A stretch of DNA of 64,000 nucleotides from Fimbriosthenelais zetlandica (taxonomy: Eukaryota): assembly GCA_977030845.1 (NCBI GenBank), contig OZ365112.1:23560001-23624000 (forward strand), given 5' to 3'. Positions 3,301-60,300 of this stretch are shown piece after piece (within the stretch, counting starts at the first letter, position 1; every line of letters begins with the position of its first letter). The notes beneath the pieces were generated by a model. The model was not told where the DNA came from. It worked only from the letters and a program-made list of their open reading frames with translations, and ran no database searches. Both the position numbers and the translations under genes were made by a program.

Positions 3301-6300
3301 CTTCACTGTCTGCCCCTGCCAATGGAGCAATCGCGTAAGTTGAATATATTTTTCATTTCATTTGACCAATTAGGACACGTAGCGGGTTCAAGCCAATTAT
3401 ACAAAACTTAATTATGTCTGCAAACTTGTATTCAGATCAACTACTGGAAGTAGCGTTGGAGCAACCATTACTTTTGAATGTGACCCAGGATTCACTCTCA
3501 TCGGGTGGAGAACAATCACTTGCCAAGAAAATAACTTCTGGTCTGGAGATCCTCCCGTCTGTCAAGGTTGGTAGCCAAAAATATTGAAGTTGTAAATAAG
3601 TCACATTTTTGTAAAACTTTGCACATTTCATTCTCGTTTTTTGCTGTAAACTGAGATGATGACCACCCGTTCCCTTTCCTTTTAAGCTGGATCATGTCCT
3701 GACAACCTGGGAACACCTCTCAACGGTTTCAAATCGTAAGAGCAACATTACACAGAAAAGAATCTGTCCTTATCAAATATTTCCCCACAAACTTGCTATT
3801 TGAGTTACTCATTTGTGCCACTTGCTCGTTCACTAATGTCTACATTTTCTTGATATCAGAGTCAATGGGCCTGTACCACCTGGTACTACCATCGTCTTCT
3901 CCTGTACCAATGGCTTCCAACTACAAGGACAAGCTATAATAACCTGTCTTTCTAACCTTGTCTACGATGCTCCACCTCCAATCTGTGTTCAGACCAGTGA
4001 GTATTGTCAAGGCATTAATTTAGGAAGAATTAGATGTATAGCCCTGCTGTCTCTTTCCCATTTTTCTGAATTTATTTAATTATCTTGTACATTACGTCTC
4101 CTGAATATGTTAATTATTCAGAAATAACATGCTTTTCATTTACCTACAGCCCGCAGATGTCCTGATATACTCGGCACGCCTGTGAATGGCTTCAGAACGT
4201 AAGTTCTATCCAACACCTCTTTATCTGGAAGTACTACAAATTCAGTCTTGCCATACCTTTCTATGTAGAATGCTCAAGTATATGTATTTATAAGTTAGGT
4301 AGGAGTTATATGCTGATTTCTGAATTTCAGTGTCAACGGGGACTTCTCACCAGGGACACAGATCCGCTTTGACTGTAACATTGGATTCCAGATCCAGGGA
4401 CAGTCAGTTGTCACCTGTCTGGACAGCCTGGCTTTTGATGCCCCAGCTCCCGTCTGCGTCCGTAAGTTTCTTCTGTATAGAAGATTTTGGTTTGCTATAA
4501 TATATAACTGCTTTTAGATGTAACGATAATATTTACTTTTAGTAGTTTTTTGAACTGCTTGTACATATTTTGCCTTTTTATTTGAAAGTGAATCTGCCAT
4601 TGCTGTCTCGTGCGTTAGTATTAGGTAATTTTGGTTAAAATCTTTCTTCCATTAAAGTTCAAACCGCCATCTGGCGTATTGTCGAACTGGTATATCTAGG
4701 TATATGTACATGTATCTCCATCCACCCATAGCCCCCAAAACCGCGATTCATGTTGAAGGCTTCTCATTATTATACCACCATGAGTTTGTGATTCCCTGAT
4801 ACTGAAGCATGCTTTTTGCCATCAGCTATTTCATGTGGGACCTTCCCACAATTGAGCGGTGTGGAGCCTAGTGACATTCCCACATCTCCTGACACTAACT
4901 ACCCAGCTACCTTCAACTTACGCTGTGCTGGATCAACAACCACCATCACAGTTTCCTGTGGCCTGGATGGCAATTGGACCACGTTTGGAATGTGTTTGGC
5001 AGGTGCATTGAAAAAAAGAGTCACTCATAATAAGAATTAAGCATACGAAGGACATCAGAAGTGTCTTGCTTCGTTCACCAGCAGCTTTCCATCTACTGGA
5101 GTGCTTAGATCCATTGTATTTCGCTGTATCAGAGGAATACCCTTCAACCGTCAATCACATATTTCACTTTGAACAGCCGCTTCCCTTTCCAGTCACTTCC
5201 GCCAAAGTTCCCCCAGTTGATCACCAATACCCCACCTTCTGCATTGCGTCAATTCACTTTCGAAATGTTACCTACCCTGGCATTGGTTTACGAAAATAAT
5301 CAGCTTCAATGCAATTCTACTCCATCTTTTGCTTATAAAATTTGCCCCTCGCTAATTTTTTTCAAACCATTGATTTTCAACTGCTTAAAAGCAACATAAT
5401 GCTAACCTGAAGGACATTTATTGCTTGTACAGAAACCCCCATAGAGCGAGTCTGTTATGAACCGCGGGATCCAGGTCCCTGTTTCCAGTTCCTGCTCCGT
5501 TACTTCCATAACAGTTTGAGTGGAACGTGCGAGAGGTTTGTCTATGGAGGTTGTCAAGGAAACAGTAACAGATTTGGGACGATTGAAGAATGTTTGAGAA
5601 TATGCAAAGGGACAGGTTAGACTTATAAGAGTGCATGATGAATCAGTGACCTATCAAGTGATTGCTGTTGAAGCCTTTGTGCTCTTGGGTTGGTTGGTTG
5701 GTTGGGTCCTCGTTTGGAAGGAGTTGGATGCATACTGGGTATGAAGGATGGAGTCAGGTTGGATGTTTGGTGGTGGAAGGAAGCATGTTACAAATCAATA
5801 TGCTATAAATGAATATTATCTAATTTTCTCCTTTCTGCCGCTCCTCTAATACAGGAATCTGACTTTCAGGGTTGCATTACCTATACAAGCTCTCCATCCC
5901 GGGGCGTCCATTTCACTCTGTCCACATACCTCCAAAATATTTACAGAAATAACATACCAATATATCTTTTGTCACCATTCTGAGCTTCCTCTGCATTCTT
6001 CTATCAACCTGGGACATGTTTCCAAAAGAAATGTATAACATTTTTCCATAATCCTCGAATGGACAAATGTCGTGCATGACACAGAGCCCTATACTTTTAA
6101 TAATTCTCCTACCTATTCACAGATGTCCATTTGGTAGTGGGTACTGGCAAATTGGTTAAGCCCAAAGTGATATTTTCTGTAACTCGATGATATTATTAAC
6201 TTTTGTCATGGTGTAAGATGATAACTATTTCCAAAGAATTATGAAAGAACAGAATTCTCTAGGTAATGTGCAAAGTTAAATAATATTCATTTATCTATTT

Positions 6301-9300
6301 TTCCAGTTGTGACCTGTCCTGAAATTGGCCCTCCAATCAATGGAATGAGACAGTAAGTATGACATTAGTTTTTAGCTTAAAGATATGGATATACATTAAT
6401 AGACTTCAATCATTCGATCAAATATAAAGAAACAAATAAATCTTACATGTCTAATCATTTTTCTCCCAGAATTAACGGAAATGGCGGACCCGGTACAGTG
6501 ATTAGGTTCCAGTGTAACACCAACTTCCAGCTGAGCGGAGCACCAGAAATTCAATGCCTCGACAACGGCCAATGGAACCAGAACCCACCAGTCTGCATCG
6601 GGGGTAAGTGTTATTCAAATATCTGCACCCAGGACAAGGATTACACTGTATATATTATATATTATGATTTCAATTTTAGTCTTGATAGTTATTCCTTCCA
6701 GAGAAAACATGACAGCGTTGGACACCATTTGTTACTATCTTTATTGCAGATTTATGAGTTAACTTTTAGATTAACCTGTATTGTATTTCAGGTACTGTAT
6801 ATAATTTATATGAATGTGTCACAGTCACATTGATGAAGAGTGTCATTTGACCACAAGGTTTTATTTTATACGGGTAAAAGGTAGACAGTGACCCTGAGAG
6901 TTCTGATGCCTGTGATGGGAGGCTTTATCAAGGCAGAGGTTGAATAAGGTACAGGATTTTGAATGGTGAGAAGGAAAGGATTAAAAAGAAAATGCTTATT
7001 AAGAAATGTGTTAGAGGTTGAGGAGGAGGATTAGCGTGAAACGTATGTGTTGCAAGAATGAATGTGATTGGTTTTGGGAGGTGAAAAACAGTGTTTATCA
7101 TAACATTGAGTTACATAACCACATGGATTATGACCACTACCTTTCAACTCTAGCCCTCAGCTGTGGTCCTCTACCAAACGTACCTAACTCGGTCGGTAGC
7201 TGGCCAGGCAACCCAACAACAACTCCAGGAAGTACTTATACCATAAACTGTGCTGAAGGATGCTCTAGGCTTACTGTTACAGCTACTTGCGGTCCAACAG
7301 GATTATGGGTACTAAATGGAGAATGTGTAGGTCAGTGGACAGAAATATACGACCCTGGCATAATGTATGCAGTGTGCTATAAATGAAAACGATATAATAC
7401 ACTTTTAAAAAAAAATCTGCCACATATATATTGGCTGCTTAAATCTTGGAAATGACCAGGCGTTTCAACGAAACCAACGATTCCATTTCCGTCATTTTTT
7501 ATTTATTTTATTTTATTTGTCGAGTTTAGTAGCAAACTGTGGTCCGGTGCCCAATGTACCAAACTCTGCTAATAACTGGCCAGCAAACCCAAACACAGAA
7601 GTAGGAAGCACCTACCAGATAAACTGTCTTCCTGGATTCTCACCAACTAGTATAACAGCTGTTTGTGGACCGGCTGGAACCTGGGTACTTAGCAGTCAGT
7701 GCACACGTGCAGGTTCGTATGATGAACATGTCTCATTGAAAATCACTCAGGAAAGTATATCACTCATTTCCTATAGATGACTTTAAATTGTTTTGTCCCA
7801 AGTCTGGGAAGTGCACGCGGCAGGATCCCCTTATATCACACTATAATTCTGGAGATTCAACAATTCAACAAACGACAGTATTCCAGAACTTTGCCAATAA
7901 GAAGCTATTTTCACATGAGATTGCCTTTGACTAACATCACAAGACTTTATGGAAAGGAAAGGACGTCATTCACAAATTTATATTTTAACCCCACGTCTCT
8001 GTTGAGAACTGACTGTCCTCTTTATGGATGAAAACTCTAGCCATCAGCTGTGGTCCTCTACCAAACGTGCCTAACTCGGTCGGTAACTGGCCTGCGAACC
8101 CAACAACAACACCAGGAAGTATTTATACTATACAGTGTGATGAAGGATGCACCACCGCCTCCGTCTCCGCAATTTGTTCTTCATCAGGACTATGGGAACT
8201 AAGTGGCGCATGTATAGGTCAGTGGACACAAAACTCATTGTAACTTTTAATGAGTAGGCCTACCAATTTATAAATCAAGCATTGGCCATTGCTTGAATAT
8301 CCTATCTCACACCACACTTTCACTTTGAAAATAGCCGTTGGGATCACCTGTGGTCAACTACCTAATGTGCCGAATTCAAGAAATGATTGGCCTGCTAATC
8401 CTGACAGGAGTATAGGGAGGAGTTACCAGGTTAGTTGTCTCCCAGGATACTCACCAACTGTTGTGACAGCAACTTGTCTCGCCACTGGCGTCTGGCAGTT
8501 AAACAGTCAGTGCTCATCATCAGGTTTGTATGATAGTAGTTTCATAGTTTTAACATGCACGGTTTTTTTTCAAGTACCAATACCGGGTACAGATAATGAC
8601 TTTAGAAATAACTTCATGCAGTTGTTACTTGTGGACCACTACCAAATATACCTAACGCTGCTGAAACTTGGCCATCTAACCCCAACACTGAGCCGGGCAG
8701 CATGTATACTATACGCTGTTCTGAAGGATGCACGACTGACACAGTCAGTGCCAGGTGTTCACCATCAGGCCAGTGGGAACTCAGTGGACAATGTACAGGT
8801 CAGTGTTCATGTCTGTAGTTCTGCAGCAGGTGATCGAGTTGACACTCGGGAAATCAATATTTAGCAGATCGTCTTATTACATTTCCAATCGTCCTGGTTG
8901 TTATCAGGTTGAATCATGTAGGGGATGATGTGTTACTGCGCTAATTTTGAGTTCATTTATAGTTATGGACTGTGGACCTCTACCCAATGTGAATAATGTA
9001 GCAGAGAACTGGCCTACCAATATCAACACACAGTTTGGCAGTCGTTACTCAGTTCGTTGTCAACAAGGTTTTCAACCAGATTTTATCACAGCAACTTGCC
9101 TGATCACTGGATGGCAACTTGACAACCAGTGTACAAGAGCAGGTCAGAATATTCCTCTGGGTCTTATATGAAGGTCTCAAACACTTTAGTATTTAAACAA
9201 ACGGGTGGTTTAGAACGACACTAAATTGGAGGATGATAACTGAAAACATGATCAATTGAATGATACCGAAATGACTAAGAGTTATTAGGTTGTTCATGTT

Positions 9301-12300
9301 TTTTGTATATAACTATTCCCTGTGGACCTATTCCCGCTTTCCCCAATACTGCACAACCCTGGCCATTCAACCCTAATAATGGTTTTGTTTAATTGATGAA
9401 TTCGCGGGTTCACAAGTTGATTTATTCATTAAAGCTGACCAATTGGAGTCATTTGTCTGTGGCCCACTACGAAATGTTAATAACATGCTAGACAACTGGC
9501 CAGAAAATCCATGGTTTGGAAATAGGCCTACTTGAATATCTAGTCCGTTGCTTGTCTGGATACACAACTGCTACTATTTGTCTTAGAACTGGATAGAAAA
9601 GTTTTAGACAGCCGTTGTTCACACACAAGTTAGAAATAGTCTACAGTCCACTATTCATTTTTGTGTATTTTTTTTGTCCTATAGTCATTATTTGTGGACC
9701 ACTACCCAATATACCTAACGCTGCTGAGCCTTGGCCATCTAACCCCAACACCCAGCCTGGCAGCATGTATACTATACGCTGTTCTGAAGGATGCACCACT
9801 GACACAATCAGTGCCAGGTGTTCACCATCAGGCCAGTGGGAACTCAGTGGACAGTGTACAGGTCAGATAAACCTAGTAAAACCTGTCTTCCACTTGTTTC
9901 ATTGGTACTCGAGAGAGATCAACTAAATTCCTTAGTAAAGGTTGCTCGAGAATAGCTGGAGAACCGTATGAAACAATGGTTTCAACTGAATTGACAGTGG
10001 AAGACTGGCTTCACTTGAGCAAATCAATCAATTATCACAATTTTTATTTGTTTGAGTCTCACCAATTGGGTTGGGTCTTTGCCTATTTTTGCCAAGTTGC
10101 CTATTTCACTTAATTCATACTTGAAATAAGTTGAATAATTGAATAACAGTTAAAATGGGGGCCTCTGATTAAAGTTATATATATGCGGATAAAACTGTTA
10201 AAGACAAAGTTTGTAGTCCTCAACAATGCTGATAACCTTACAGACTAAAAGTATGTGCGGCTGGAATTGTATTTTTTGATAGTTATGGACTGTGGACCTC
10301 TACCCAATGTGAATAATGTAGCAGAGAACTGGCCTATCAATATCAACACACAGTTTGGCAGTCGTTACACAGTTCGTTGTCGACAAGGTTTTCAACCAGA
10401 TTTTATCACAGCAACTTGTCAGTTTGGTGGATGGCAAATAGACAACCAATGTTCTAGAAGAGGTCAGATATTAATAGTAACCTGCTTCTTTTCTATGAAG
10501 TGGAAATTATTTGTCATATCTTAGTCCTCGCATTGCCCTTATCAACATAATTTTGAAGAAACAGTACATCTTTAATGGAATCCTGTATTTGTCAGTAAAC
10601 CAATATAGTTATCAACTATGGACCAATAGCAGGAGCTACATGTATGAGGGAATGCACTCAGTTTATTTAACTAATTGTTCTTCCTCAAATAATTACATTA
10701 CATCCTGAACTAATGGTTCTACCTCTCATAACTAAAATCACCTCAACCTTGCCTCCCCTTAGTCATTGACTGTGGACCCATACCTGTACTACCCAATGCT
10801 GGTGAACGCTGGCCACCAAACCCCAACACACAGCCTGGCAGTACTTACACTGTTCTCTGTGTGGAGGGATGCACTATTGAATCAGTCACAGCTACTTGCA
10901 CATCATCAGGCCAGTGGCGATTCAGTGGGCAATGCACAGGTTAGAGTGACAATAATAATAACATCATCATGATCATTATGCAACTTATTTCTATGAATTT
11001 CTAACTCACCATTTTATTTAGTTTATTTTAATTTGTTAGTTTTCTGTTTTATTTTCTAATATACCAGAATTTTGAAAATAGCAAACACAGAAACACGAAG
11101 TAACATTGTAGAAGTAATCTTAATGATGTGAGTAACACCTAATTTTCTTTTAGTCATGGATTGTGGGCCACTCCCAAATGTACCAAATGTAGCTGATAAC
11201 TGGCCAGTCAGTCCTAATACACAGTTTGGAGCCACCTACACTGTCCGGTGTTCGCCCGGATACTCACCATCCTTCGTCACAGCAACTTGTACTCTCAGTG
11301 GATGGCAAATAGACAACCAGTGCACACGTAGAGGTCAGAGGTTTGAAAATAAAAAATCATGCTGCATTTATCTGAGAAATAATATGCAATGTTTCTTCCA
11401 AAGAGTCTTAGATGACATATTTACATAATTACCGAGTTCGGTATAATTTATATACCCTTGTTAAGGATCATGCACAAAATGAAGTGTTTGAAGAAAATCC
11501 ATTCATAACTCCCTGTTTGGAAGACTAACCTGACTTATGCACTACCGCTACTAATCAGACCCATGTACAATGTACATGTAGGATTGTGTCCTCTCAATCT
11601 TCCACTGTGGCTCATTGTCTGTATTGTTTAATGCTTTTCAACACTTGCCTCATCAACTATAGCTGCTGGACAAGCAATCCGGGCTCAGTTGTTAGACACA
11701 CTATTTTCATCAATTTGAGTTCACAACTGCTGCTATCACATCAACATGCTTCCTATGTAAACGGCAAATAGGCAACAAATACGCAATTACAAGCCACATA
11801 TCACTCTCTCTATTCATGGATATAAAAATTACTATTTCTGTGATAACTCTTCAGAGATGTGTTCTATATTATCATGTACTATTTGTATGTGATAAAATAT
11901 TCTGCTAACCCATAGTTTAAGGACCATACTTTTCGCTCCAATTCTTAATATGCCTAATATTGACTTACACAATTTCTTCTTAGTCATCAACTGTGGAATA
12001 ATACCTGTACTACCTAACGCTGCACAACCCTGGCCATCAAACCCACTTACCCGTGTTGGCAGTACTTACACTGTTCCCTGCCTAACAGGATGCTCTACTG
12101 ATTCAGTCACAGTGACATGTTTAGAATCAGGGCAGTGGCAGTTCAGTGGTGAATGTAGAGGTCAGGACAACAATTTATTTTTCATCAAAAACCAAGTTTT
12201 TGCGTCAAGCATTTCTTACAAATTTCTTTCACATATTAGTATATTCATACAAACAGATATTCAGCTGTAAGAATTACTGCCTCTCCAAACTGCTCAGGGA

Positions 12301-15300
12301 TGCCTTGTGAATATAATGGTGTTCAACAGACGTTTTTCTTTTCAAAATCTAATGAAAAATGTAGGCTTTAATATTCATGAGAGTCTCACTAAACTTAATT
12401 TCTTCCTAGTCATCGAGTGTGGAATAATACCTGTACTACCTAACGCTGCACAACCCTGGCCATCAAACCCTATTACTCGTGTTGGCAGTACTTACACTGT
12501 TCCCTGTGTAACAAGCTGTACTACTAATACAGTCACAGTGACCTGCTTACAATCAGGGCAGTGGCAGTTCAGTGGCCAATGTACAGGTTAGACAGCCAAT
12601 TCATGTTTCTACCAAAACAAAAGTTTATTTTCCAGTGGAAGAATTTTAAACGTAAAAACGTATTATTCCACATGTTAGTATTATTAATTTCTTGTTCACA
12701 TACTGGCAACTTAGTCAACCAGTCAACCCTTATGGTGCCCCAAAACAGTTCTCCTTTTGCAAATGAACTTTTTGACATCTACCAGAGATTCATTTAACTT
12801 TGCTTATTCCTAGTTATTGACTGTGGACCAATACCTGTACTACCTAATGCTGCACAACCCTGGCCATCAAACCCACTTACCCGTTGTGGCAGCACTTACA
12901 CTGTTCCCTGTGTAACGGGCTGTGCTACCGATATAGTTACAGTGACCTGCTTACAATCAGGGCAGTGGCAGTTCAGTGGCGAATGTATAGGTTAGGCAGA
13001 CTATGATTTATCACAAAGAAACATTATTGCACAACTTTTTATTTGTTCAGTACACGTGGCAAATTTGGGGGTAAAATTATTTTAAATTATCACCTGACTC
13101 ATTAGCACTGTCATTGGCTATTGAATTATCCATTTTGATCCTCAAGCCGAATAAGGCATGTACATCAACGTCTTCACAATTTAGCAAACGATAGAGAAAC
13201 ACAGTTGATTGTACCTCTAGTTATGGAAAGTGGACCACAAGCAGTATCAAAATGTAGCTGAGAACTGGCTGGCTACCCTGACACACAGTGGGCACTTCCC
13301 CATCAGTTGAATGGCAAATAGGAAATAGACAACAATGCACAAATTAAATTCATAGTTTCACAGTAGGTCTTGCATTGGAATGGCGCTCACTTGTCAGACT
13401 TGTTATGCTATCATCAGATTGGGAAATCGTTCCATGACTTTTAAAAGCTATTTTGAAACATTTTCCTCTAAAACTTTACTTCCACGGAAGGGGATAATAA
13501 TCTATTTGAGAAATATATCTTAAATATTCAATTCCGTACATTTCTGACTGTATTAATCTTTTAAAACTTCCTCCTAGTCATCGAGTGTGGTATAATACCT
13601 GTACTACCTAACGCTGGACAACCCTGGCCATCAAACCCTATTACTCGTGTTGGCAGTACTTACACTGTTCCCTGTGTAACAAGCTGTACTACTAATACAG
13701 TCACAGTGACCTGCTTACAATCAGGGCAGTGGCAGTTCAGTGGCCAATGTACAGGTTAGACAGCCACTTTATGTTTCCACATGAACTTAAGACTTCCCAT
13801 TTAAGATATGAACTCTCTAGTACCCATAAAAGACTCACTTAAATTTACTTATTCCTAGTCATCGACTGTGGACCAATCCCTGTACTACCTAACGCTGCAC
13901 AGCCCTGGCCATCAAACCCACTTACCTGTTGTGGCAGTACTTACACTGTTCCCTGTCTAACAGGATGTTCTACTGATTCAGTCACAGTGACATGTTTAGA
14001 ATCAGGGCAGTGGCAGTTCAATGGTGAATGTAGAGGTCAGGACAGCAATTCCTTTTATACCAAAAACAAAGTTTTCACATTAAGACTTTCATAAAAAAAC
14101 ATTTTTCACATGTTAGCATATTTATATGGACCATGGTCATAATTGCTGCCTGTCCAAATTGATCAGAGATGTCTTGTGAATAGAATAGTGGTGTTCAATA
14201 AACCTTTCTTCTTTTCAAAATTAACTGAAGAATGTAATACTCATGAGAGACTCACTATAGTTAATTTCCTCCTAGTCATCGAGTGTGGAATAATACCTGT
14301 ACTACCTAACGCTGGACAACCCTGGCCATCAAACCCTATTACTCGTGTTGGCAGTACTTACACTGTTCCCTGTGTAACAAGCTGTACTACTAATACAGTT
14401 ACAGTGACCTGCTTACAATCAGGGCAGTGGCAGTTCAGTGACCAATGTACAGGTTAGGCAGCTAATTCATGTTTCCACCGAAACAAATGTTTATCTTCCA
14501 CTGATATCTTTTAACCATTAAATTATTTTACACACGTTAGTATTATTAATAGCAGCATAGATTGTTTAGTGTAATAATTTCTTGCTGTTCCAATTTATAT
14601 GAAATGCCTCCCAACAATTATGGCTTTCAAGAAAATTTTCCCTTGAACAAATGAACTTTATAATACCCGCAAAAGACTAACTTAAATTTACTTCTTCCTA
14701 GTCATCGACTGTGGACCAATACCTGTACTACCTAACGCTGCACAACCCTGGCCATCAAACCCACTTACCCGTTGTGGCAGTACTTACACTGTTCCCTGTC
14801 TAACAGGATGCTCTACTGATTCAGTCGCAGTGACATGTTTAGAATCAGGGCAGTGGCAGTTCAATGGTGAATGTAGAGGTCAGGACAGCAATCATTTTTT
14901 CACCAGAAGCAAAAGTTCCAACACAAAGAGAAAATATATACATATGCTAGCACATTTATACCGCCAGATTATCGATCTAAGAATTTCTATTGGACCAAAT
15001 TGTTCAGAGATGCTTTGTGAATTTTATTATGGTGCTCAGTACATATATTTTTGCAAAGTTTAATGAACCTTGTATTCTCCTGAGAGTCACTGAACTTAAT
15101 TTCCTCCTAGTCATCGAGTGTGGAATAATACCTGTACTACCTAACGCTGGACAACCCTGGCCATCAAACCCTATTACTCGTGTTGGCAGTACTTACACTG
15201 TTCCCTGTGTAACAAGCTGTACTACTAATACAGTCACAGTGACCTGCTTACAATCAGGGCAGTGGCAGTTCAGTGGCCAATGTACAGGTTAGACAGCCAA

Positions 15301-18300
15301 TTCATGTTTTCCACATAAACTTACGTTTATTATCCACTGAAAAATATATTAAAAGAAGCATAGATTGTTTAGTGTAATAATTTTTGTTTATTGCAATTCT
15401 GCAGATATGCCTCCTAAACATTATGACTTTCAGGAAAAATTCTCCTTTTAAGAAATGAACTTTGTTGTACCCACAAAAGACTCACCTAAATCTACTTATT
15501 CCTAGTTATTGACTGTGGACCAATACCTGTACTACCTAACGCTGCACAGCCCTGGCCATCAAACCCACTTACCCGTTGTGGCGGTACTTACACTGTTCCC
15601 TGTCTAACAGGATGCTCTACTGATTCAGTCACAGTAACATGTTTAGAATCAGGACAGTGGCAGTTCAGTGGTGAATGTAGAGGTCAGGACAGCTATGCAT
15701 TTTTCACCAAAACAAAATTTCCTCACTAAGACTTTCATACAAAATATTTTCACATGTTAGCATTTTTATAAAGACAGGTCTTCCATAAACAATTATTCTT
15801 TTCAAAATTGAATGAACAATGTATTATTCATGAGAGACTCACTAACCTTAATTTCCTCCTAGTCATCGAGTGTGGAATAATACCTGTACTACCTAACGCT
15901 GGACAACCCTGGCCATCAAACCCTATTACTCGTGTTGGCAGTACTTACACTGTTCCCTGTGTAACAAGCTGTACTACTAATACAGTCACAGTGACCTGCT
16001 TACAATCAGGGCAGTGGCAGTTCAGTGACCAATGTACAGGTTAGGCAGCTAATTCATGTTTCCACCGAAACAAATGTTTATCTTTCACTGATATCTTTTA
16101 ACCATTAAATTATTTTACACACGTTAGTATTATTAATAGCAGCATAGATTGTTTAGTGTAATAATTTCTTGCTGTTCCAATTTATATGAAATGCCTCCCA
16201 ACAATTATGGCTTTCAAGAAAATTTTCCCTTGCACAAATGAACTTTATAATACCCGCAAAAGACTAACTTAAATTTACTTCTTCCTAGTCATCGACTGTG
16301 GACCAATACCTGTACTACCTAACGCTGCACAGCCCTGGCCATCAAACCCACTTACCTGTTGTGGCAGTACTTACACTGTTCCCTGTCTAACAGGATGCTC
16401 TACTGATTCAGTCACAGTGACATGTTTAGAATCAGGACAGTGGCAGTTCAATGGTGAATGTAGAGGTCAGGACAGCAATCATTTTTCACCAAAAACAATA
16501 TTTCCCCACTAAGACTTTCATACAATATATTTTCACATGTTAGCATTTTTATACAGACACGTCTTCCATAAACATTTATTCTTTTCAAAATTGAATGAAC
16601 AATGTATTATTCATGAGAGACTCACTAACCTTAATTTCCTCCTAGTCATCGAGTGTGGAATAATACCTGTACTACCTAACGCTGGACAACCCTGGCCATC
16701 AAACCCTATTACTCGTGTTGGCAGTACTTACACTGTTCCCTGTGTAACAAGCTGTACTACTAATACAGTCACAGTGACCTGCTTACAATCAGGGCAGTGG
16801 CAGTTCAGTGGTCAATGTACAGGTTAGATGCCAATTCATGTTTCCACCAAAACTAAAGTGTATTTTCGACTGGAAGACTTAAACATTAAGCATTTCACAT
16901 GTTAGTAAATGTTCTGATTGTAATAATTTCTTACTCGTATTCTGGTGAAAGGCCAGTCAACTATTATGGTGCTTAAAAATCATTATTCCTTTTGCAAATG
17001 AACTTTGTGGTACTCACTTAACATTGCTTCCTCTTAGTCATCGACTGTGGACAAATACCTGTACTACCTAACGCTGCACAACCCTGGCCATCAAACCCAC
17101 TTACCCGTTGTGGCAGTACTTACACTGTTCCCTGTGTAACGGGCTGTGCTACCGATATAGTTACAGTGACCTGCTTACAATCAGGGCAGTGGCAGTTCAG
17201 TGGCGAATGTATAGGTTAGGCAGACTTTAATTTCTCCCAAAGAAACATTATTGCACAACGTTTCACTTGTTCATTTTGTGCGGCAAATTTTGGGTGAATC
17301 ATTTCTGGTTATTATCAATTGTCACCTTACTTATTAGCACTGCCATTCTCTATTGAATTATCCATTTTGATCCTCAAGCCCAAGGCATGTACATCCCATC
17401 TTTACAATTGGCAGACAAACACTTATATCATTGTAGAGCTATTACCTCTAGTCATAGAAAGTGGACCACCACCAGTATCAAAATGTAGCTGATAACTGAC
17501 CGAGCTACCCTCACACACCTTTTGTGAGCACTTCCCCATCAGTTGGATGGCAAATAGAAAATAGAAAACAATGCAAAAATGGAATTCACAGCTTCACAGT
17601 AGATCTTACATTGGAATGGCGCTAGTTTGTCACACTTTATATGCTATCATCCGATTGAGAAATCTATCCATAACATTTAAGAACTATTTAGAAACATGTT
17701 CCTCTGTCTAAAATCAATCAAGTAATAGATATAGTTTATTCCTATCCATCAAAATTGTTAAATGTCTAACATTCCTTCTATGGAAGATGATGAAAATCTA
17801 CCTGAGTGTTGAAATGCACCTTACATATTCAACTCCACACATTTCTGACTTTATACACGTTTTAAAACTTCCTCCTAGTCATCGAGTGTGGAATAATACC
17901 TGTACTACCTAACGCTGGACAACCCTGGCCATCAAACCCTATTACTCGTGTTGGCAGTACTTACACTGTTCCCTGTGTAACAAGCTGTACTACTAATACA
18001 GTCACAGTGACCTGCTTACAATCAGGACAGTGGCAGTTCAGTGGCCAATGTACAGGTTAGACAGCCAATTCATGTCTTCCACATAAACTTACGTTTATTA
18101 TCCACTGAAGAATTTTAACCTTTTAAATATGTTAGTATATTATAAGCAGCATAGATTGTTTAGTGTAATAATTTTTGTCTGTTGACATTCTGCAGATATG
18201 CCTCCTAAACATTATGACTTTCAGGAAAAATTCTCCTTTTAACAAATGAACTTTGTAGTACCCACAATAGACTCACCTAAATCTACTTATTCCTAGTTAT

Positions 18301-48300: not shown

Positions 48301-51300
48301 TCCCATTTGCACACGTAAGTCAGCCATCTTGGAACTCAATTGTCATCCATCAGGACATTTTAGTTATCATGCTTCCTGACTGGACTTCCTCCTCTAGAAT
48401 GATGCCATGCCTTAGCCTTTCTTTTTTCATCTCCCAATTTTCTCATACGTATACAATACTTCTCCCCTTCTAGAAACAGCTTGTCAAGCCTTGCCACCTT
48501 TACCCTTTGGTGTGGCATCCTGGCCAAACATAATGGACAGGGGACCTTCAGCTTTTTACTGGGTTCCCTGTATGGATGGTTTCACTCCACCTTACATCCA
48601 ACTCGCATGTTTGGCTAGTGGTAATTGGGAGGTCAGAGGGGAATGTCAAGGTTAGTTTTGGGGACATTTTTAATTAGAGTGACTAATACATCAATGGCAT
48701 CAAGATATTTCCATGTTTTCTTCGATTAATTCATTTGATTTCATCAAATTTCATTGTGACCATCTTGTCTTCATGCATTCGCTAATAAGGACCTACCAAT
48801 CGATGCCCACAAAACTCTGCTCTTGCAAATGGATATACAGAGTGAGCCAATTAATTATCAAACGAGTCAAACCGAGTTATAAAATAAGTTAAACGCAGCC
48901 ACTGACTTCATTAGGCTCTTCTTTGTCCTGTTGTTTACTCACCTTTTTACTGTTCAAGGATCATTGGTGATTTAGAAGTTGGTTCATCTATGTTCTTCTT
49001 CTGCAATAACGGCTACACTCTTCAAGGGAGGTCGGAACTAGTTTGTGAGATAGACTTGCAATGGGACTACCCTGCCCCAACCTGCCAAAGTAGGTCCTAG
49101 TGTTGAAGTGGATATTAGTCCCCTTACAACTGGTTTATAGTCTCATTGAAATTCGTGAGAACGTTCTGAAGGATAACAAATTATCCATGTGGATACTTCT
49201 ATATTAGAAAGTATCACCGTTGGTCAAACATTGTAGGGATAGCGCATACCATTCAAAGTTTCAACTTATGTCTTTTTCACCTGTTTAGTCTCAGACTGTG
49301 GACCACTGCCTGATCCCTTCACTTTGAACCTTCGAGGTTCATGGCCACCCGGTGCCCCCACCACATACCTCCAAAACTACACGCTTCCATGTGAGACAAA
49401 CTTTCTCCCCCCTGAAGTCACAGCCACGTGCACGGCCACTCAAGGCTGGATATACAATGATTTTTGTCGAGGTTAGTGTCATCGGTGTGACATGTGTTAG
49501 CTTTCGTTTGCATGCAGATCTTCGACTTTAAAAAATAGTTTTTTTCATTTTCCATTATATCCCATTATTTCCACATCATTCCTGTAGTGATTGTCCGTCC
49601 CTTTGGTGTCCTTAAGTTGACTGTTATTTCCATACTTAAGTTTTCTGGAAAAGTGTGTTCGTATTGTGATTGAATACCTTCAATTTTTCATTCCTAAGTG
49701 CTTTGGTTGGATTTTGTGTGTGATATTTTTTGGTGTTGTAATACGTGTTTTTTCTGCATGTATCCATCATTTTCTTCGTCAACAATGATGTGTTAAGCGA
49801 TACTTTTGTACTATTTTAATTGTGTATATTTATACATGTTTCACACACATAATTTATACCTATTACTTTCAGCGATATGAGATATTTATCTTTTTATCAA
49901 GATGGCTTTCTTTATCACATCACTAATGTTCATGTAGACTGTTACTTTGGTCATGCATACAAAATGTTTATATGCTGGACAATTGAATAAATATTGTCCT
50001 CATATAGCTCACAAATCGCTGTTTTATGCCTTTCAACCCAAGTGTATGAACTTTCACTTACCTTCTAATTCACTTGTATGAATTTAGTTACCCAAGGGAC
50101 ACGATGTGACACTCCACCAAGACCAGTGGATGGTGATAGAATGTAAGTTAGTAGAAATCATCCCAACTGATTTAACTAAAAAAAACACTGTCCAAACAAA
50201 TAATATTCAACAACCTATGCAAAACTAAATTACCGAAATAAGGCCGAACAAAACAGTTTAACAACGACTCAGTGTTTCTAATTCTGTAAGGGTTAGGACA
50301 TATCATCAAGTGAAACAGTTAGAGACTTTCTGTGTCGTTCAGTATAATGATAATTATGAAGTTGTTTGTTGTTCACTTTTGCCAGTATTGATGGGGATCT
50401 CACACCTGGCACCATGGTCACTTTCACTTGTAACGCAGGATTCACATTGGTTGGTGAAAGACTACTGCAATGCCAGCAAAATGGGCGTTTTAATTCCCCT
50501 GCCCCAACATGCGTTGGTAAGGAAATTAGTCAGTTAATGGCATTAGTTAGCTGCTGCTGAGCTTAATACAGCCAGATACGATAAAATGTTTGTAAATCCT
50601 CCAGGAACAGACTGTACCCAACCACCAAACCTCCTGGTTTTTGGAGTGGATCCGTCTGAATCTGTGACGATGACACGCTATCCTGTGTTCATGTGGTTGC
50701 GCTGTGCCCCCAACACCATGCTGGATTTTGTATCATTGACCTGCCTGTCAGATGGATCATGGAGTGTGTCTTCACAATGCTCTGGTCAGGTCGATTATAT
50801 ATTGGACTGTTTGTAGTCTTTGTCTCTACCTCTGGTCAGGACTTCCTTTGACCTTGTCCCTGCTGTTTTATTCTTATGCAGTGCAATATATGCCATGGTG
50901 CACATTCCCGCTTTCCTGAAAGCTAGGCCATTTTAGTGACCCATGTTCTGGTACCAATAGTAGCTCTTGCTTCCTTTACTGTACTATTATTGGACACATT
51001 ACCTCACGAGGTCTAGTAAACCTCAAGTAATTTCAAAGCCTTCCCCCTCTGTGGCTTACAATTTGCAATTTCTGTTTTGTCTTTGGCATATCTATCTTTC
51101 AAATACATGCACATTATTAAGTATACATGTATATATTTTGGCACATTTTGATGTCTGATAATAAGACTAAGTTTAAATTGGACACCCTCTCCATTTCTGA
51201 CTTAAAGAGAGATTTATTTTCTGGCATCATGGATTAAGATGTGAAGTTTTCACAGGTGCCCCAAGTCAGTGTCCTGAATTGAGACGCCCTGAGAGAGGTT

Positions 51301-54300
51301 ACATGCAGTAAGTGTCATCCTCTCCATTCCCTTCATAAAATCTAAGACAAAACCAGTAATTGATGGGCAAGTATCTGGCTGTTTACATTTAAAGCCTTGA
51401 TACCACATAATGCATTTGTTTAGTGTCCCCTCAAATCTCCACGTTGTCAATTTATGCAACAAAAAGGATCAATGGTGGACGGTTGATTGGTACAACAGTC
51501 ACCTTTAGCTGCGAGGATGGTTTCATCTTAACTGGTTCTGATAATCTTATGTGCACTTCTAATAATATCTGGGACCGTGAGACACCGACATGTGAACGTA
51601 AGTCCATCCATTCTATGCCTGACCATGGTCCGGTGGAATCATAATCATTTAACCAGCCATCGCCGATTTCCTGTTTTCTGATTATACAAATCTGAAGTGA
51701 AGCCATGATTTTCCAATAACACAAAGTATATACTATATTTTAATTTGGTTATCAGTGACTGCTGCCAGTGGCAGTGGCCCTGTCCCTGAGCTCATGTGTA
51801 AAGGTAAATGTGTGAAGGAAATTTGAACATGTCTACTTGATCTTTTCTTTATCATAAAAGCTTCTTCTGGGATGGCATGTAGCTCAATCCTCAATCCAAA
51901 CAATGGATTCAGAATGTGAGTTTTTTAAAATTCATTTTTAAACTCCATATACTTCCACATTTATATTTCATTCAGAATGTAATTCCAACATTTGGTTCCC
52001 TTGTTGGTTTTGAAATATTCTATTCTCGACCTTCCTATTTCTCAGTGTGATTGGTAGAAACATATCCTTCAATTGCAACGAAGGGTACCGATTGAATGGT
52101 CCCTCGTTTATCCTTTGTCTGCCAAATGGGCAATATACTCAACAGTTGCCAACTTGTGAACGTGAGTAGTTGACAACTAAGAACGTCTGTAGATTTTTTG
52201 GCTTTCCAAAAGTGCAATATTTGAGTAATTCGTCTCGACATATTTTATCAGTGTCTGCATCATGATGTAGCAGTGTTGATAGCTCTGTGTCCTTGTTTTA
52301 TTTTGTGTGTAGCGGCTGTTTGTGGTGATCTCCCACCATTACCTGCTGGTGTTGTCTCATGGCCTGAGATTGATCGCAGACAGTCCCCAGCATTTTACTG
52401 GCTCACATGTCGTCCAGGCTCCAACAAGGACTATGTACCTTTACGGTGTTCAATGGATGGCTTTTGGATTACCCCTGAGGATTGTGGGGGTCAGATGAAC
52501 TTTTAACTATTCATTTTTACTGGATTTTTTCTTGTGGTTTTTATTGACTTTGACCTGTAGGAAGATTACTTCAGTGTTTCCACCCTTCATTCCAATGACC
52601 TTTTCCACACTATGTCCATCTTGTTTCGTCTAAAGAATTGATGCTTGATCCTTAAAATATTTGCTTTCAAATTCTTACTCTTTATCTGATTTTATTGATC
52701 AATTTCTTTCTCTCTTCCAGGACCCTTTCAGTGTTTTCCCTGTTTGCTGTTCCCTCCTGTCCCTTTTCCCTCATTTTAATACCTTTTAATGAATGAATGA
52801 CATTATATAAATATGGAATTTATTCATACCTGTATACTGACTTTGATTCCGACAGTTTTAAGATATGGATTAGCTAGTACTAGTTAACCATCCTATCTTT
52901 TGCTAATAGGTAGAACCAAATTTTATTTAAATCTTTTTTCCACATTTTTCCTTATTTCAATAGTGGTGCAATGCCCAGCCATCAACCAAATACGAAACGG
53001 TTACGCCAAGTAAGTTGCAAGACCGAAATTAATTGAGTTACCATGCTATGCCAGGTTGGAGACTTATAAGTGAGTTGACATTTATTGAAATGCAAACTTA
53101 TGGTGATAGAAATGATGCTATACGAATAGTGAGTATGGAAGCCAATACATAGGCCTACTGAAAGAGCAATTTTGGGGGGAGATCTCAGAGAAAGCAATTG
53201 AGTTTAAGATGTAGTTTTTAAATTCTAGTTTTATACTTACCAGTCTCTATTACATTTCTAATTAGTTTTTAACGTTTCTTAGTATTAGTGAGACTGAGAC
53301 CACGTTCACTTGCTTCCAAGGCTTCTCAATAGTTGGTCCGGCACGGATCGTCTGCCAGCGAGACGGCACATGGAGTGGTCCGGTACCAACTTGTGAACGT
53401 GAGATAACAGTCCTTTAGTTCCTGAATTGAATTTTGATATGAATTAGAGCAGGTTTTCTGTAATCAAAGATTTGAATTCCCACCTACTACACCATTCCAA
53501 AGAAAATCTAATAGTAACATTCCATCGCTCCAGGGACATCTACTCCACAGTGCGTCGATTTGCTGGACCCAATCAATGGATTCATTGTGTAGGTTACATT
53601 CTGGGTGATGGTTCCACGTGCCTTTTTACAAATAATTCACAGCTGCTGCAGGCAAAAAATGCTATATGATTTTCCAAATTTTACCTCTGATTCTTTGGCG
53701 AGAATGACCTCATTCAAAGTATTGTGCAGTATTACGCTTTAAAATTTGTTCTCGTTCTTTCCATTAGGCGGGAAGGGGACACAAACGTGGGATCAAAGAT
53801 CACTTTCTTCTGTAATCGTGGATTTAGACTGACAGGCAATGGAAATCTAACCTGTCAGAGTAACATGGAATGGGATCAACCAACCCCACGGTGTGTTCCA
53901 TGTAAGTAGTTGAGTGTCGACAAAAATCGAGCAAGGGGTTCCCTTTATTCCTCTTCTGCCCTGATGCAGACTCCTTGAAAAAGGCTCTCTCCTCTTTTCG
54001 TATCTTCTGAAGAGGAAAACAGAATTTACTCTTCTGGTGCTAGAGCAAACTTGGGATGAGACTGGCTAGGGAATGGATCTAATCTTGGAGAAATGTTTTC
54101 AGCATGGGCAAGGTAGAAGTTTGTTTGAGTGTATGTCCTGCAGTGGGCATGATGTGAACGATGGCTTTCATTGCATTTCTCGGGCTGGATGAATGAATTG
54201 ACTCACAGCTGAAAATATATGAGCACATAATTACTCCTCAGAATAGCAAGCATATAATGAAACAACTCACAGATGTCGTCAAATAGCAAGCACCCTTTTG

Positions 54301-57300
54301 ACCTCAACGGTTTTTGGCTGGGCTTTTATCATGCAATCTCAAGATCAAAACTGTCAATGTGTTGAAACTCCATCTTCTCTTTTTACCTTTGATTTTAGTT
54401 TTGATATCACTGTTGTCTATGATGCTTCTTTTATCTGATACAAATCGAATGAAATTTTACCAAACGTTAAAATATACATTGGTTTATATCTGTCACCACC
54501 AAAATAAAATCACATAACTCACATGCTTTGTTTGTACAGGTATTAAAGCAACATATTTATTTTTTATCAATCATCTGCAAACAGCTGCAACTGTCACTGA
54601 CTGTGGACCTTTACCAAACTTGGATGGCACCAGGGGTCAATGGAACCCTGGCCAGGGCACATCCAGTGGTTCAAGACATACTATACAATGTCAAAATGGC
54701 CTTGCCCCTCCCGTCGTCACCGCATTCTGCTCTCAGGATGGTCAATGGCAATACATTGATGGCATTTGCCGAGCAGGAGGTCAGAAAATCAAATGCTCCC
54801 AATACAGTGGTTACATTAGCACGATAACATTAACAGCTCCTCCTGCACATTACAGACAGAACGAGCATTATGTTCATCTTTGTCATCATCATGCTGGCGT
54901 TACCATTGTCTTTTTCTCTTCACGGCCCCAATGGGCTTTTCTTGTGGTGAACTGCTGTTAGATTGCACAAACTACATGTATCTCTTCCTCGTCTCCTTCC
55001 ATACAGTTTCTTCATGTCTCTTGTATTATATACACAGTATAGGTTTGTGTGCCACTGGTTATGGTGGCCTCATGTATGTGAGCTAATGTGATTGTACCTG
55101 TTCTCATCACCATTTTCTCTGTACTCCGCTTTCAGATGTGGGACCGGAATAAGATTACTTTACAATATTCACTGTGTCCCATATATAGGCTCTTCTTTAT
55201 TATTTTTATTATCACCCCACCCCATATTTCTTGCCATATTTGCTATATTCTTGCTTCTTTGCAGGTTTCCAGTTTCTATGTGTTTACTCTTGATTTCTCG
55301 CTGCCGCCATGCATTTCCTGTCATAACCAAAGTGTTTTACTTTTGAGCGCTGATTAATTAACAATAAGCTTTTTCTTTGCTCCTGCATCTTAAACACCCT
55401 TATTTAATTTCCAATATTCATCCTGTCTTGAAAATAAAACTTGCAGGTTCTGTGGAGGACTCAGAATGTTACTCTGCAATGGGCTGTTGAAACTATTGGA
55501 AAGCATTTCATAAACCAATAATCTATAATTTATAAAAGACTCATTCCTACCAAGTTAACGTTGATCTAACTTTCAAATTAGAACAATTCTAATACTGCAT
55601 TAATTACTCAAAATTAAACTTTGGAAATGATTACATATTGTAACAGAAATATTCAATATTTTATAGGATCTGTTTGGAAATGAATTTAAACATACCATTT
55701 TAATAATGCAACCAAAGTAAATCATACCAACTATTATTCTCTATTCATACGTATTCCTTGATAATATTGAAAGATATTGATATTAAATGTCCTTTATTTA
55801 ATTTTTGCAGCTTCAAGATGTCAAAACCCTGGTGGCATTCGAAATGGAAGAATAGAGTAAGCACTTGTTTTTGATTACATTAAATTATTCATCCTAAAGT
55901 CAAGTCTTTAGGTATTTTTTGACTGATAGTGGAGTGTATTTTCACTTGATGTACACACCACATTGCGAAACCATCAAAAAGATACCTAGAATGTCTCTGA
56001 TTGAATCTTTCCACTATTTAACAGAAGGATCAGTAATGAAGATTTCACTGTGGGTACAGTGGTCACCTACATCTGTGACCGAGGCTACAATCTACAGGGA
56101 GACAGGAGCATTGTCTGCAGAGATAACCTTCAGTTCACCCCCAATCCTCCAGTCTGTTCCCGTAAGATGACAGTTTAATCTCTCTAACATAACACCATAC
56201 CAGCACGAATGTATAAGAAAGTTTACTGTTTCAGGACTGATGATCATACATGTATCATAATGCTTCACATTTCCATTGCCAACTTATAATCTGAGAATGA
56301 CAAGGAATCTTCTGTTGCTAAGCATTTTGGGGATTTTTTTGCTCTCCTTAATTTGCCAGTCTGTCCATTCATCTCACTAATAAACCAAAGATTGAAACAA
56401 ACCAACAGCCCGGGGCTGGCTGCAATCAATGCATGCAAGCAGTTGAATGGCATGCTGGATACTAGTGACATCACAAGCAATGTTGAAAGTATATTCTTCT
56501 GCCAGTGATCCTCCGCTTTCTTGTAACTCGTTGATAATGCGTTCTCAGAATCCATTTTTGTACGGTCATTTTGTTCTTTTCTACTAGCATCTTCTACGGG
56601 CTGTGGAGCATTACCTTTCATTCCCAATATTCGGATCTCTGATTTGCCTACTAACCCCACTGGTACAGAGACCCTCAATGTGCGTTGTGAACGTGGTTTT
56701 TCACCGTCCACCATCACTATCAACTGTATAGGTGGGAGGTGGACACCCTCCCAGCAATGTATTCGTAAGTCTCAAGCACATGAATTCACATTCTCCTCAT
56801 TTTTACCAAATATTTTATTTACGCTGAATTAATCTTCAACTCGTCATGTCTGAAAATTAATTCCTTCATGTGAATACCACCCTTTTTGCTATATTAATTC
56901 CAAAATATAATTTTATTTTTGCGAATTAATACTTAATTAATACTCATTCTGTTTAATGTAAATATTCACTTTTCTGCATTATTAATTTGAATGATTTTTT
57001 GTTATTAACTTTTAACACTATGTTGGCTTTTTGCTCACACCTTACAACTTGCTTTATTTATGCAGCCATTGACTGTGGCAACCAGATTCCAGATACTCTC
57101 TCCTTAGGAGGAGGACTTGAGGATGGTGCGCGTACATCATATGGCTCGACTCACAGCCTGCCCTGCCCAGACGGCTTTACGCCGCTCAGGATCACCATCT
57201 CCTGCTCTGAGAGAGCCACCTGGGAATCCAACCAAAACTGCACATGTCAGTCTTTATCTCATGTGTATCTCTCTCTTTTGTGAGAGAAGTACCAATGAGA

Positions 57301-60300
57301 GATGCAGCTCACACGTGTTTCAAAATGTCATTGATATTCAGAGTGGAGTTCGGGGAGACAAGCCCCCAAAACGACCAAACGATAATTTTTACATTCAGTT
57401 TTCAAGAAACCGATAGAATACCTTAAGAGACTAAGAGTTTTGAACCGTGACCTCTTTTATTTTGCTCTTGGTTGTAGGGAATTTGGTTTAAAAAGATAAT
57501 TTGAAGTCTAGCTTTAATAATTCATAGAATTATGTAAATTGCATACCTTTAAAATAATAAGTGAACTCTTCATTTTACAGCCATGCCCGACTGTCCAAAT
57601 ATCATTTCACCACCTGACGGAACTATGATGTAAGTAAGATTGTAAATCCATGGAAACCAGCATACTTACTGACATGATTTCTAAGAACATGTAAATTGAC
57701 TAATGTACTCACCGTTTCACCTATTCTCTTTCTAGTATCAACGGAACACTCCTCAGATTTTCCTGTAACCCTGGCTTCCGATTGTCTGGCCCACCAGAAA
57801 TCCTCTGTTCTGCAGGAATCTGGACGGACAATCCACCGACCTGTTTGCGTAAGTAAATGATTAAGCTTTGACTGCATGCTTCTGGTGTATGGTCACCATG
57901 CTTGTTTAGTTACCTTGATTTCATCATCTATATGCTCTGATTAAATCATGTATGTAACTAACATAGATTGTAAACATTTACATGACATAGTTTAAGTAGA
58001 TCCATTCACTATTAACATATCTAACATTGATTCACCTGATGTCAGCAACAATCTGCGAGGACTCGTTTCCCACCGTACCTAACGTAGTCAGAAGTACCAT
58101 ACCTGATTTTCCTAACCCACGAGCCGCTGGAGAACCGATCGTTCTCCAGTGTGAGACCGGATTCTCCCCTGAGACTGTTACTGTACAATGCACAGAAGAC
58201 GCAGAGTGGAACGTCAGCAGCCGCTGTGAAGGTTACCATTCTCACGTTTGATAATGTTTTACAAAACCTGATCAGAACAAATAGTGCAGTTGATATAGTA
58301 AATCTTCACAAACCATCAAAATTTAGGATGACCCATCACAATAATTATATTCATGATATTCCACCTATTGTGCCCTGGAAGTCGAAGCATCATTATTATT
58401 ATTTGAAGACATTTTGGACAACGTAGAGCATGAGATTTTCATGTTTCGTGTATCTCAATTCGGCCAGACTGTGTTAGAAAATTCACAAGCATGACACAAT
58501 TGATTATTAGTTGCATGTAATACATTGATGATTTTACAGTTCCAATGATAGGGCGTTGTTCCCTGCGCCTTGACCCCGGCACCTGCGATTTCGATGTGAC
58601 ACTTTATTATTACAATGTATTAACTGATCGGTGTGAGGAATTCGTGTATGGAGGTTGTGGGGGCAATGACAATCGCTTCAGCACAGAACTGGAATGTCAA
58701 AACACATGTGGTGGTGAAGGTGAACAAATTTTAAAGATATGATGGATACACTTGCTCAGGCTATAACAGTTGTACTTTGATGCGAAAGAACAAACTTTAA
58801 ATTTAATATTCGGTTAATATTCTATTAAAATAAATTTCCTGAGGAGGTGGTATCTTGATTCATCTTTCACTGTCGATTTGTGTTTCACATTTGATATAAT
58901 TCATCAGATTATTATCTAATCTGATCCTGCATGCTTTGTCTAATCCAACTCAGCTTTTCAGCTCGGCGATACACGCATATCTTAACATCTTTTCACATGT
59001 TCAAGTTGTACCTTGAACTATATTCATTAAAGATAAAATCGTCCAGATCCTAACCAAATGGAAATAGTTTTTTGTTAGCATGTTCTTACGATATAATTTA
59101 GGAAGAGAATGATTGCAATTGCTCATATCTTAGGTTTTATTGTGACCTTTCAGCTATTCCCGGGACCTGCATTGCCCCAGTTATTCAAGGAGAGGTAGAG
59201 CTGGCCAGGTAAGATTCTCCCTTTCTTTATAACAATCACTGCCTGTGGAACATTTCTGTGGAACATTCCTAAAGTAACACTATACAATGATAACATCCAT
59301 TCTGTCTTTCAGATTTGAAGGCAACCGCCTGATAATCACCTGCAGGCCTGGATATGCCCTGGATAGATCAGACTATGAAATCATCTGCCTCACTACAGGA
59401 AACGTGAACATTCTTAACGGCATTCTACCTGCTTGTCGAGGTATTCAGCCATAGTTTAGTAATTTTCAAACCCGGGGTTCCTTTTCATTGTATGTGTAAA
59501 ATAGTACGGATATGGCCTCTGCGTTTCACTGGCATAGAAACCTGAAGGTCCACCATTTAATGTTCCAAAAATACAGTTTCCCCTGTAACATGCTAAAACT
59601 GGAGGTGTCAATAATTGTGGGAGCCATATGTCATGATAGGGCACCTGAAAGAAGAGCCACAAATACAATAATGAACAGACAATACTTGATACCATGAGCA
59701 CTGTTGAAAGGATCAGTAGATTGAGATTGAGACAGGCCTTTTGGAAAGCATAACTATATGAATAACAATCCTATACAAACATGGTGAGGTGATTATTATA
59801 TTAAATGGTTTTTCAGCACTACATAATCCAAGTACATAAAGCCCCAGAGGTGGTACACACACACATTAACCTAAGTTTTGCATAATGAGACTGAATAGTA
59901 GACCGATATATCATGTTTAGAAGTTTAGACTGCTGGGCTTCATTTTAGACTGGAATTTGCTCTTTTATAGTATGAGATTATATACGTCGGTATGTAAAAT
60001 AAAAAAAACTGGGTAATTGTATATATATTTATAGCTACATGTGTATTTCTTGCCATACTGTGTGTTATGAGTAAAAAGAAGCTAATTGGGAATATACAGC
60101 AGGAAGCTAATTGGGAATATACTCATTTTTAATCATGGTAGTACTGTGTCAGAGTAAAGGAACAGTACTAGGGGTTAGTGGTGTTGTTGGGTATGGTAAG
60201 AGGTATGGGCTGCCTAGTTGGCAATGCTTACTAGGTGATCAAGGTGACTGGAGGACTCGGCCCCGGAGCAGCAGGGACATGGTCAGTAGTTACATGATGT

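Follow-up and report, generated by a model that had tools for sequence, protein, structure and literature searches.

The 64,000 nt window analyzed here (C13:23,560,001-23,624,000 of the 447-Mb eukaryotic assembly of Fimbriosthenelais zetlandica) contains a long array of small exons on the + strand, each of them coding for one cysteine-rich module of about 58 amino acids, which we call the S type. There are 89 of these exons, spanning positions 4826-58231, and the array amounts to about 5,300 residues in total. Very probably they are a divergent subfamily of the sushi domain, also known as complement control protein (CCP) module or short consensus repeat (SCR), which has been expanded in tandem under purifying selection within one giant gene, whose product may serve as a scaffold or binding array.

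The S modules have the form Cys1-G-P-x-P ... Cys2 ... Cys3 ... W-x5-Cys4. The original prediction, made from the letters of the window, had described 89 single-exon copies, and we have reproduced the limits of the array exactly, with a first start at 4826 and a last end at 58231. With a profile built from these modules (the S profile) and a lower limit of 40 bits, 89 domains are found on the + strand, while the - strand and a codon-shuffled window, taken as controls for chance, give none. The ends of the array are:

4826-5002, + strand: first S exon, a divergent module with four cysteines (subclass E, described below), 55.8 bits on the S profile
58046-58231, + strand: last S exon

Structure and fold of the S modules

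All 89 S exons are open frames with an in-phase AG acceptor and an in-phase GT donor, which makes them symmetric phase 1-1 exons. The acceptor AG is usually found 8 nt upstream of Cys1 and the donor GT 4 or 10 nt downstream of Cys4. Acceptors have a pyrimidine tract, the donor consensus is CAG/GTCAG (exon/intron). Exon length is 174-198 nt, 177 being the commonest value, and the introns between S exons are mostly 100-700 bp long.

The window also contains 18 canonical sushi modules made of two exons, each of them split by a phase-2 internal intron. Their first exon (43-55 nt) has the form C-P-x-x-x-P-x-N-G-x-x-x, and its phase-2 donor site is mostly GTAAGT; the second one usually starts 43 nt upstream of Cys2. 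Four of these modules are found near the start of the array:

3289..4461, + strand: three canonical two-exon sushi modules with the phase-2 internal intron, second exon alone 44 bits on the Pfam Sushi profile (PF00084)
6307..6603, + strand: canonical two-exon sushi module, second exon alone 41 bits on PF00084

The two kinds of module differ in several features, which agree with those originally predicted. Counts for canonical modules cover the 17 of 18 which can be cleanly joined. Cysteine spacings in S modules are 27-31 / 9-13 / 10-12 residues. The distance between Cys2 and Cys3 is 12 residues in 76 S modules, 9 in 10, 10 in one and 13 in two; it is 13 in 17/17 canonical modules. Pro two residues before Cys4 is present in 0/89 S modules versus 17/17 canonical ones, and NG at its canonical place in 0/89 versus 12/17 (x-G in 17/17). 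A Trp is found between Cys3 and Cys4 in all S modules, as W-x5-Cys4 in 86 of them, and 68 have a WP motif within the loop between Cys1 and Cys2. The four cysteine columns are invariant across 46 non-redundant S modules.

Some of these features are not restricted to the S type. The P-x-N-G turn and the Pro before Cys4 are frequent in the CCP consensus, not universal. The short sushi modules of large proteins from other organisms, such as P0001 (3897 amino acids, Sushi plus VWD), P0009 and P0021, also begin with C-G-x-x-P, have a Cys2-Cys3 distance of 12 residues and end in G-x-W-x5-Cys without Pro. They too are repeated in very long arrays (P0001 has 56 matched stretches). Since these foreign modules share both features, neither the hairpin of 12 residues nor the absence of Pro is unique to S modules. 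Nor does the absence of P-x-Cys4 decide sushi membership, as Pfam recognises these modules as Sushi although they also lack that Pro. Unlike S modules, they retain NG, have an N-T-S/T-Y-G stretch instead of W-P-x-N-P, get the same score from the S profile and the canonical one, and lie outside the S clade. Within the samples compared, what sets the S type apart is the missing Gly together with the W-P-x-N-P loop.

The gathering score of PF00084 is 20.7 bits. When the 46 non-redundant S modules were scanned singly, 16 reached about this score, 32 matched at E<=1 (best 8.5e-7) and 14 had no match, so the poor scoring expected for this family was confirmed. Ten representative modules ranged from no match up to 25 bits. 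On the whole, single S modules score from none to about 30 bits, and neighbouring canonical second exons alone 36-47 bits. The summed score of the full protein would pass the cut-off easily. PF00084 is the only family consistently matched by S modules. Weak matches to HRM (PF02793) were seen in 15/46 modules (E >= 0.004). The HRM domain has a sushi-like fold, and we have taken these matches as a reflection of that fold, not as family membership. No match to Sushi_2 (PF09014) was found in the Pfam scans.

All 19 matches of the S profile among PDB sequences are CCP proteins (CR2, CR1, C4BP, Crry, beta-2-GPI, MASP-2, DAF, factor H), with E 1.3e-8 for the two-module fragment C4BP alpha CCP1-2 and down to 3e-13 for whole chains. 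The nearest clusters to an S module by ESM Atlas language-model features are Sushi (0.95). The AlphaFold model of module 23649-23825 has a predicted local distance difference test score (pLDDT) of 88.9. In a wide search of the PDB, independent of Foldseek, its 50/50 matches listed are CCP-type; the best one has Z 6.9 and a root mean square deviation of 2.1 A over 57/59 residues. Foldseek also gives top rows which are nearly all CCP/sushi-type, with weak E-values (0.04 or worse), and the neighbours in the AlphaFold database are mostly named sushi-domain-containing proteins. Module 48476-48649 has no Pfam match, its model (pLDDT 96.6) is nevertheless CCP-type in 49/50 matches listed (Z 5.8). A fold of this type had been proposed for checking in the original prediction.

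The low single-module Pfam scores (most below the gathering score, 14/46 with no match) and the weak Foldseek E-values might suggest a separate four-cysteine family whose likeness to sushi is due to convergence. We give this explanation a next to negligible probability: PF00084 alignments are full-length down to the best E-value, the S profile finds nothing except CCP proteins in the PDB, and the structural neighbours listed are nearly all CCP. In addition, S modules share the class 1-1 exon type with sushi and alternate with canonical sushi modules in one gene. By sequence and predicted fold, the S modules are members of the sushi/CCP superfamily rather than a new kind of domain or a new fold.

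Compared with the CCP modules of factor H, CR1, CR2, C4BP and DAF, the S module has kept a size of about 60 residues with four similarly spaced framework cysteines, the invariant Trp between Cys3 and Cys4, the Cys1-x-Pro start, the class 1-1 exon and tandem linkers of about 4-6 residues; its predicted beta-sandwich superposes on modules of factor H, C1s and SPICE. On the other hand, it has lost the Gly of the P-x-N-G turn and the Pro before Cys4, acquired a conserved W-P-x-N-P in the segment where CCPs have a hypervariable loop, and shortened the Cys2-Cys3 hairpin by one residue (four in subclass D). Half of the modules also have extra cysteines. There are precedents for divergent or specialised variants of the CCP fold: Sushi_2, the fifth domain of beta-2-glycoprotein I, and the sushi domains of IL-2R alpha and IL-15R alpha, both among the structural neighbours. 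Unlike S modules, these have their own insertions, C-terminal extensions or domain swaps.

Lineage and distribution of the S type

S modules of the window score 56-96 bits on the S profile and 1-20 bits on a canonical profile, which was derived from sushi modules at other loci of this genome. For canonical modules of the window, the values are 3-18 and 26-61 bits, respectively, and no canonical module of the window or of the genome sample is above 20 bits on the S profile. In a tree of 93 modules (46 S, 17 canonical from the window and 30 canonical from the genome), the separation of S modules needs only two label changes. The split canonical modules of this gene also group together, therefore the gene contains two module lineages, each expanded in place. 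The best maximum-likelihood tree (125 rows, foreign short sushi modules included) places S modules, including those linked to proteases described below, on one side of a branch and 75 other sushi modules on the other, with a Shimodaira-Hasegawa-like approximate likelihood ratio (SH-aLRT) of 78. Sequence comparison thus points to a largely distinct, loop-remodelled sushi lineage.

The S profile finds 109 exons with at least 50 bits across the genome: the 89 of this array and about 20 elsewhere. The latter always appear in pairs, on C11 (2.46, 2.48, 3.45-3.59 Mb), C38 and C39. They are part of genes with the order trefoil x4 - trypsin - S - S - EGF - trypsin, the only other genomic home of S modules found by this search. 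This trefoil/trypsin/EGF family is itself tandemly duplicated, with copies at C11 2.455-2.465, 3.446-3.456 and 3.480-3.490 Mb, C38 1.011-1.021 Mb and C39 2.763-2.773 Mb (L008-L012). Introns of the protease genes (for example, L010, - strand, 139-2500) hold a minisatellite whose translation contains many copies of a Cys-rich motif about 45 residues long. An adjoining second repeat translates as a recurring nine-residue unit; both look like non-coding repeats.

The protease-linked modules bear on another explanation, namely that S modules are ordinary sushi domains which have drifted, and that they share their features by repeated change or gene conversion within the array instead of descent from one lineage. 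The S clade is modestly supported (SH-aLRT 78-80), concerted evolution readily affects tandem arrays, and the short sushi modules of P0001 and P0009 share the 12-residue spacing and the missing Pro, yet have about 24 bits per module on Pfam Sushi. We consider this unlikely. S modules from the unlinked protease genes, which were not used for training, score 52-60 bits on the S profile versus 14-29 on the canonical one and fall inside the S clade, and the foreign short sushi modules retain NG and have about 37 bits on both profiles alike.

Outside this genome, we have searched 1.84 billion representative proteins, a collection which may lack those of this genome and its close relatives. Most of the matches listed are generic multi-sushi proteins, with 44 bits or less per module. 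Only two short open reading frames among them, P0142 and P0148 (66-67 bits), are S-like. They are located on an ENA metagenome contig (L013) and on Logan contig ERR14368248 (L014), neither of which has a DNA-level match with this genome. The S exons of both contigs have the same boundaries as those described here: 8 nt separate the AG from Cys1, and 4 nt separate Cys4 from the GT. Positions 330-1700 of L014 contain two S exons, next to a canonical second exon, which are 41% and 53% identical to 41262-41444 and 41730-41921 of the window and are found in the same order. This stretch is probably the orthologue of the following one:

41262..41921, + strand: two S exons, matched in order by those of contig L014 from another organism (41% and 53% identical)

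Because L014 holds S exons in the same order, the S family is probably older than the divergence of at least two species. A search for homologous proteins with a second alignment (A2) found nothing, but it was limited to exon-sized fragments, so its negative outcome carries little weight.

The original prediction had also proposed a single ancestral module, intron-less and with a remodelled loop, as the founder of a lineage-specific family. A discrete lineage is supported by the cross-scores and the tree. The absence of an internal intron, however, is ordinary. In vertebrates, a phase-2 intron interrupts some CCPs. In this genome, about 130 of the best 150 matches of a genome-wide Pfam Sushi search span the profile from 1-7 to 51-56 within one open frame. 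Sushi modules of this genome normally have no internal intron; this is not a derived hallmark of the S type, and the phase-2 split is less common. Single-exon modules of class 1-1 are a general rule for mobile extracellular domains (PMC8001218). Lineage specificity has also been confirmed only in part: S modules form a separate cluster, but about 20 of their exons are found in protease genes and others on two contigs of other organisms. The matches of the genome-wide Sushi search include a locus without introns at C10:33,621,000-33,630,500 (- strand), a single open frame of 2462 amino acids with dozens of canonical sushi modules.

Subclasses and duplication history

The 89 modules may be classified in four subclasses. 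Subclass A contains 21 modules with four cysteines and G-F/Y-x-P after Cys2. Subclass B has an extra cysteine at Cys2+4, with a total of five cysteines in 32 modules, six in 8 and seven in 3. Subclass D corresponds to the 10 short modules with 9 residues between Cys2 and Cys3, and subclass E to 15 divergent modules with four cysteines. They are distributed in blocks:

7154..11333, + strand: Block 1, 10 S exons, five-cysteine (B) alternating with four-cysteine (A) modules
11984..22076, + strand: Block 2, 23 B-type S exons with five, six or seven cysteines, which holds the youngest tandem unit
22483..35672, + strand: Block 3, 30 S exons in units of about 2.65 kb (four modules), for the most part with B and A in alternation
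36861..41082, + strand: Block 4, 10 subclass D exons, two types alternating with a period of about 890 bp
42667..58231, + strand: Block 5, 13 subclass E exons interleaved with 14 canonical two-exon sushi modules

In the 43 B-type modules (7154-34164, especially 12814-22076), a cysteine replaces the conserved aromatic residue at Cys2+4, which leads to an odd number of cysteines. Eleven of these modules have gained one or two further cysteines, about 8 residues before Cys2. The extra cysteines may pair with one another or remain free.

The blocks have arisen by duplication. Self-BLAST of the window detects tandem units of 0.8-2.7 kb, introns included, which are 82-96% identical. The youngest one, in Block 2, is a 2016 bp unit with 95.6% identity over 3.4 kb. 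Tandem Repeats Finder reports no repeats, its period limit of 500 bp lying below the size of these units. The ratio of non-synonymous to synonymous substitutions (dN/dS) over 458 paralogous module pairs has a median of 0.36 and a pooled value of 0.38, and it is below 1 in 98% of them. In older duplicates, exons are more conserved than introns (97-98% versus 75-88%, for example). One intron contains copies which have not been kept:

9143..9684, + strand: decayed B-A pair of S exons in an intron, one cut off after the W-P-x-N-P loop and the other with frameshifts and stops

This decayed pair points to a turnover of copies within the array. In summary, the array has grown by repeated tandem duplication, in units of two to five exons, and it is under purifying selection.

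Long and similar repeats are hard to assemble, and at least one exon pair is decayed. It might be argued that the array is largely made of non-functional repeats, pseudo-exons or an inflated repeat assembly, with no real coding region of 89 modules. This is highly improbable. Frames are open and correctly bounded by AG and GT in 89/89 exons, conservation is higher in exons than in introns, and dN/dS has a value of about 0.37. Copies differ by 2-20%, therefore they are not assembly duplicates. Finally, the decayed pair shows how unconstrained copies look at this locus.

Gene context and significance

Domains of other types are found on both sides of the S array and between its first exons:

589..855, + strand: open frame which includes a WAP four-disulfide-core exon belonging to this gene (PF00095, 28.3 bits)
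5411..5617, + strand: open frame with a Kunitz/BPTI exon (PF00014, 71.3 bits)
58521..58739, + strand: open frame with a Kunitz/BPTI exon directly 3' of the last S exon (67.3 bits)
62006..62652, + strand: two more Kunitz/BPTI exons (67.1 and 74.8 bits)

The upstream flank (C13:23,554,200-23,560,000) contains about 10 WAP exons. All exons are compatible in phase. From strand, phase and domain content only, we infer a single, very large gene spanning about 76 kb, with about 10 WAP, at least 4 Kunitz and more than 18 canonical sushi domains, plus the S array; it would extend past both ends of the window. Past the first downstream Kunitz exon there are two sushi-like exons (59278-59451 and 61081-61280) which follow neither the S pattern nor the canonical pattern of this gene. 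The downstream flank, up to about 23,630,300, has more sushi-like second exons of another subtype (C-P-x-G-x-x-P-x-N-x-x-V-T-C ... P-P-x-x-C).

Since each module corresponds to one class 1-1 exon, tandem duplications or exon skips would remain in frame. The product may be a secreted scaffold, arranged as beads on a string, or a multivalent binding array joined to protease-inhibitor domains. Linkers of about 4-6 residues would join the S modules into a disulfide-stabilised chain, and the remodelled, conserved loop would be a likely contact surface, repeated beside the inhibitor domains.

A role in the control of extracellular proteolysis is suggested by analogy, because the proteins of a separate gene family have an S pair flanked on both sides by trypsin-like domains, in a manner similar to a CCP pair. 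C1r, C1s and the MASPs have the order CUB-EGF-CUB-CCP-CCP-SP, with the CCP1-CCP2 pair ahead of the serine protease domain. The S pair on C11, C38 and C39 also adjoins trypsin-like and EGF domains, the CCPs of C1s are among the structural matches of S modules, and those of MASP-2 among their sequence or structural matches. Nevertheless, the protease-linked S genes have a different order (with four trefoil domains and two trypsins), and no CUB domain has been seen within the 10-kb stretches read at these loci. The likeness concerns the position of the pair and need not imply orthology to complement proteases. As a speculation to which we give little credence, the W-P-x-N-P loop could make S modules a dedicated recognition unit in a protease/inhibitor system specific to this lineage: the S pair of the proteases would dock on the array of 89 modules of the giant WAP/Kunitz protein, used as a multivalent trap or storage scaffold for them, while the unpaired cysteines of five-cysteine modules cross-link the matrix.

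Several points weigh against the interpretation of the array as a sushi subfamily with a scaffold or binding role. The structures of S modules are predictions; in CCPs, the disulfides join Cys1 with Cys3 and Cys2 with Cys4, and this pairing would be expected here too. One to three extra cysteines are found in 44 S modules. The SH-aLRT for a single S origin is only 78-80, on about 60 alignment columns. The scores of S modules on their own profile are partly circular, as it was trained on these modules; the protease-linked ones (52-60 bits) provide an independent check. That there is a single gene, and that all of its exons are used, has been deduced from genomic sequence, and a function in proteolysis control is based on domain context only.

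In spite of these points, the locus is a real, constrained and strongly expanded sushi/CCP variant which is under-detected by Pfam, with an ordinary single-exon structure. There is no new fold or mechanism here, and no long-standing question is opened. It does matter for annotation: Pfam alone would leave many residues of the S array unlabelled or patchily labelled, while a dedicated S profile separates these modules cleanly from canonical sushi. Besides, the locus presents subtypes, gained cysteines, decayed copies and the re-use of a module in a protease family. It is a clear and datable case of how class 1-1 exons let a module expand to 89 copies in one gene.

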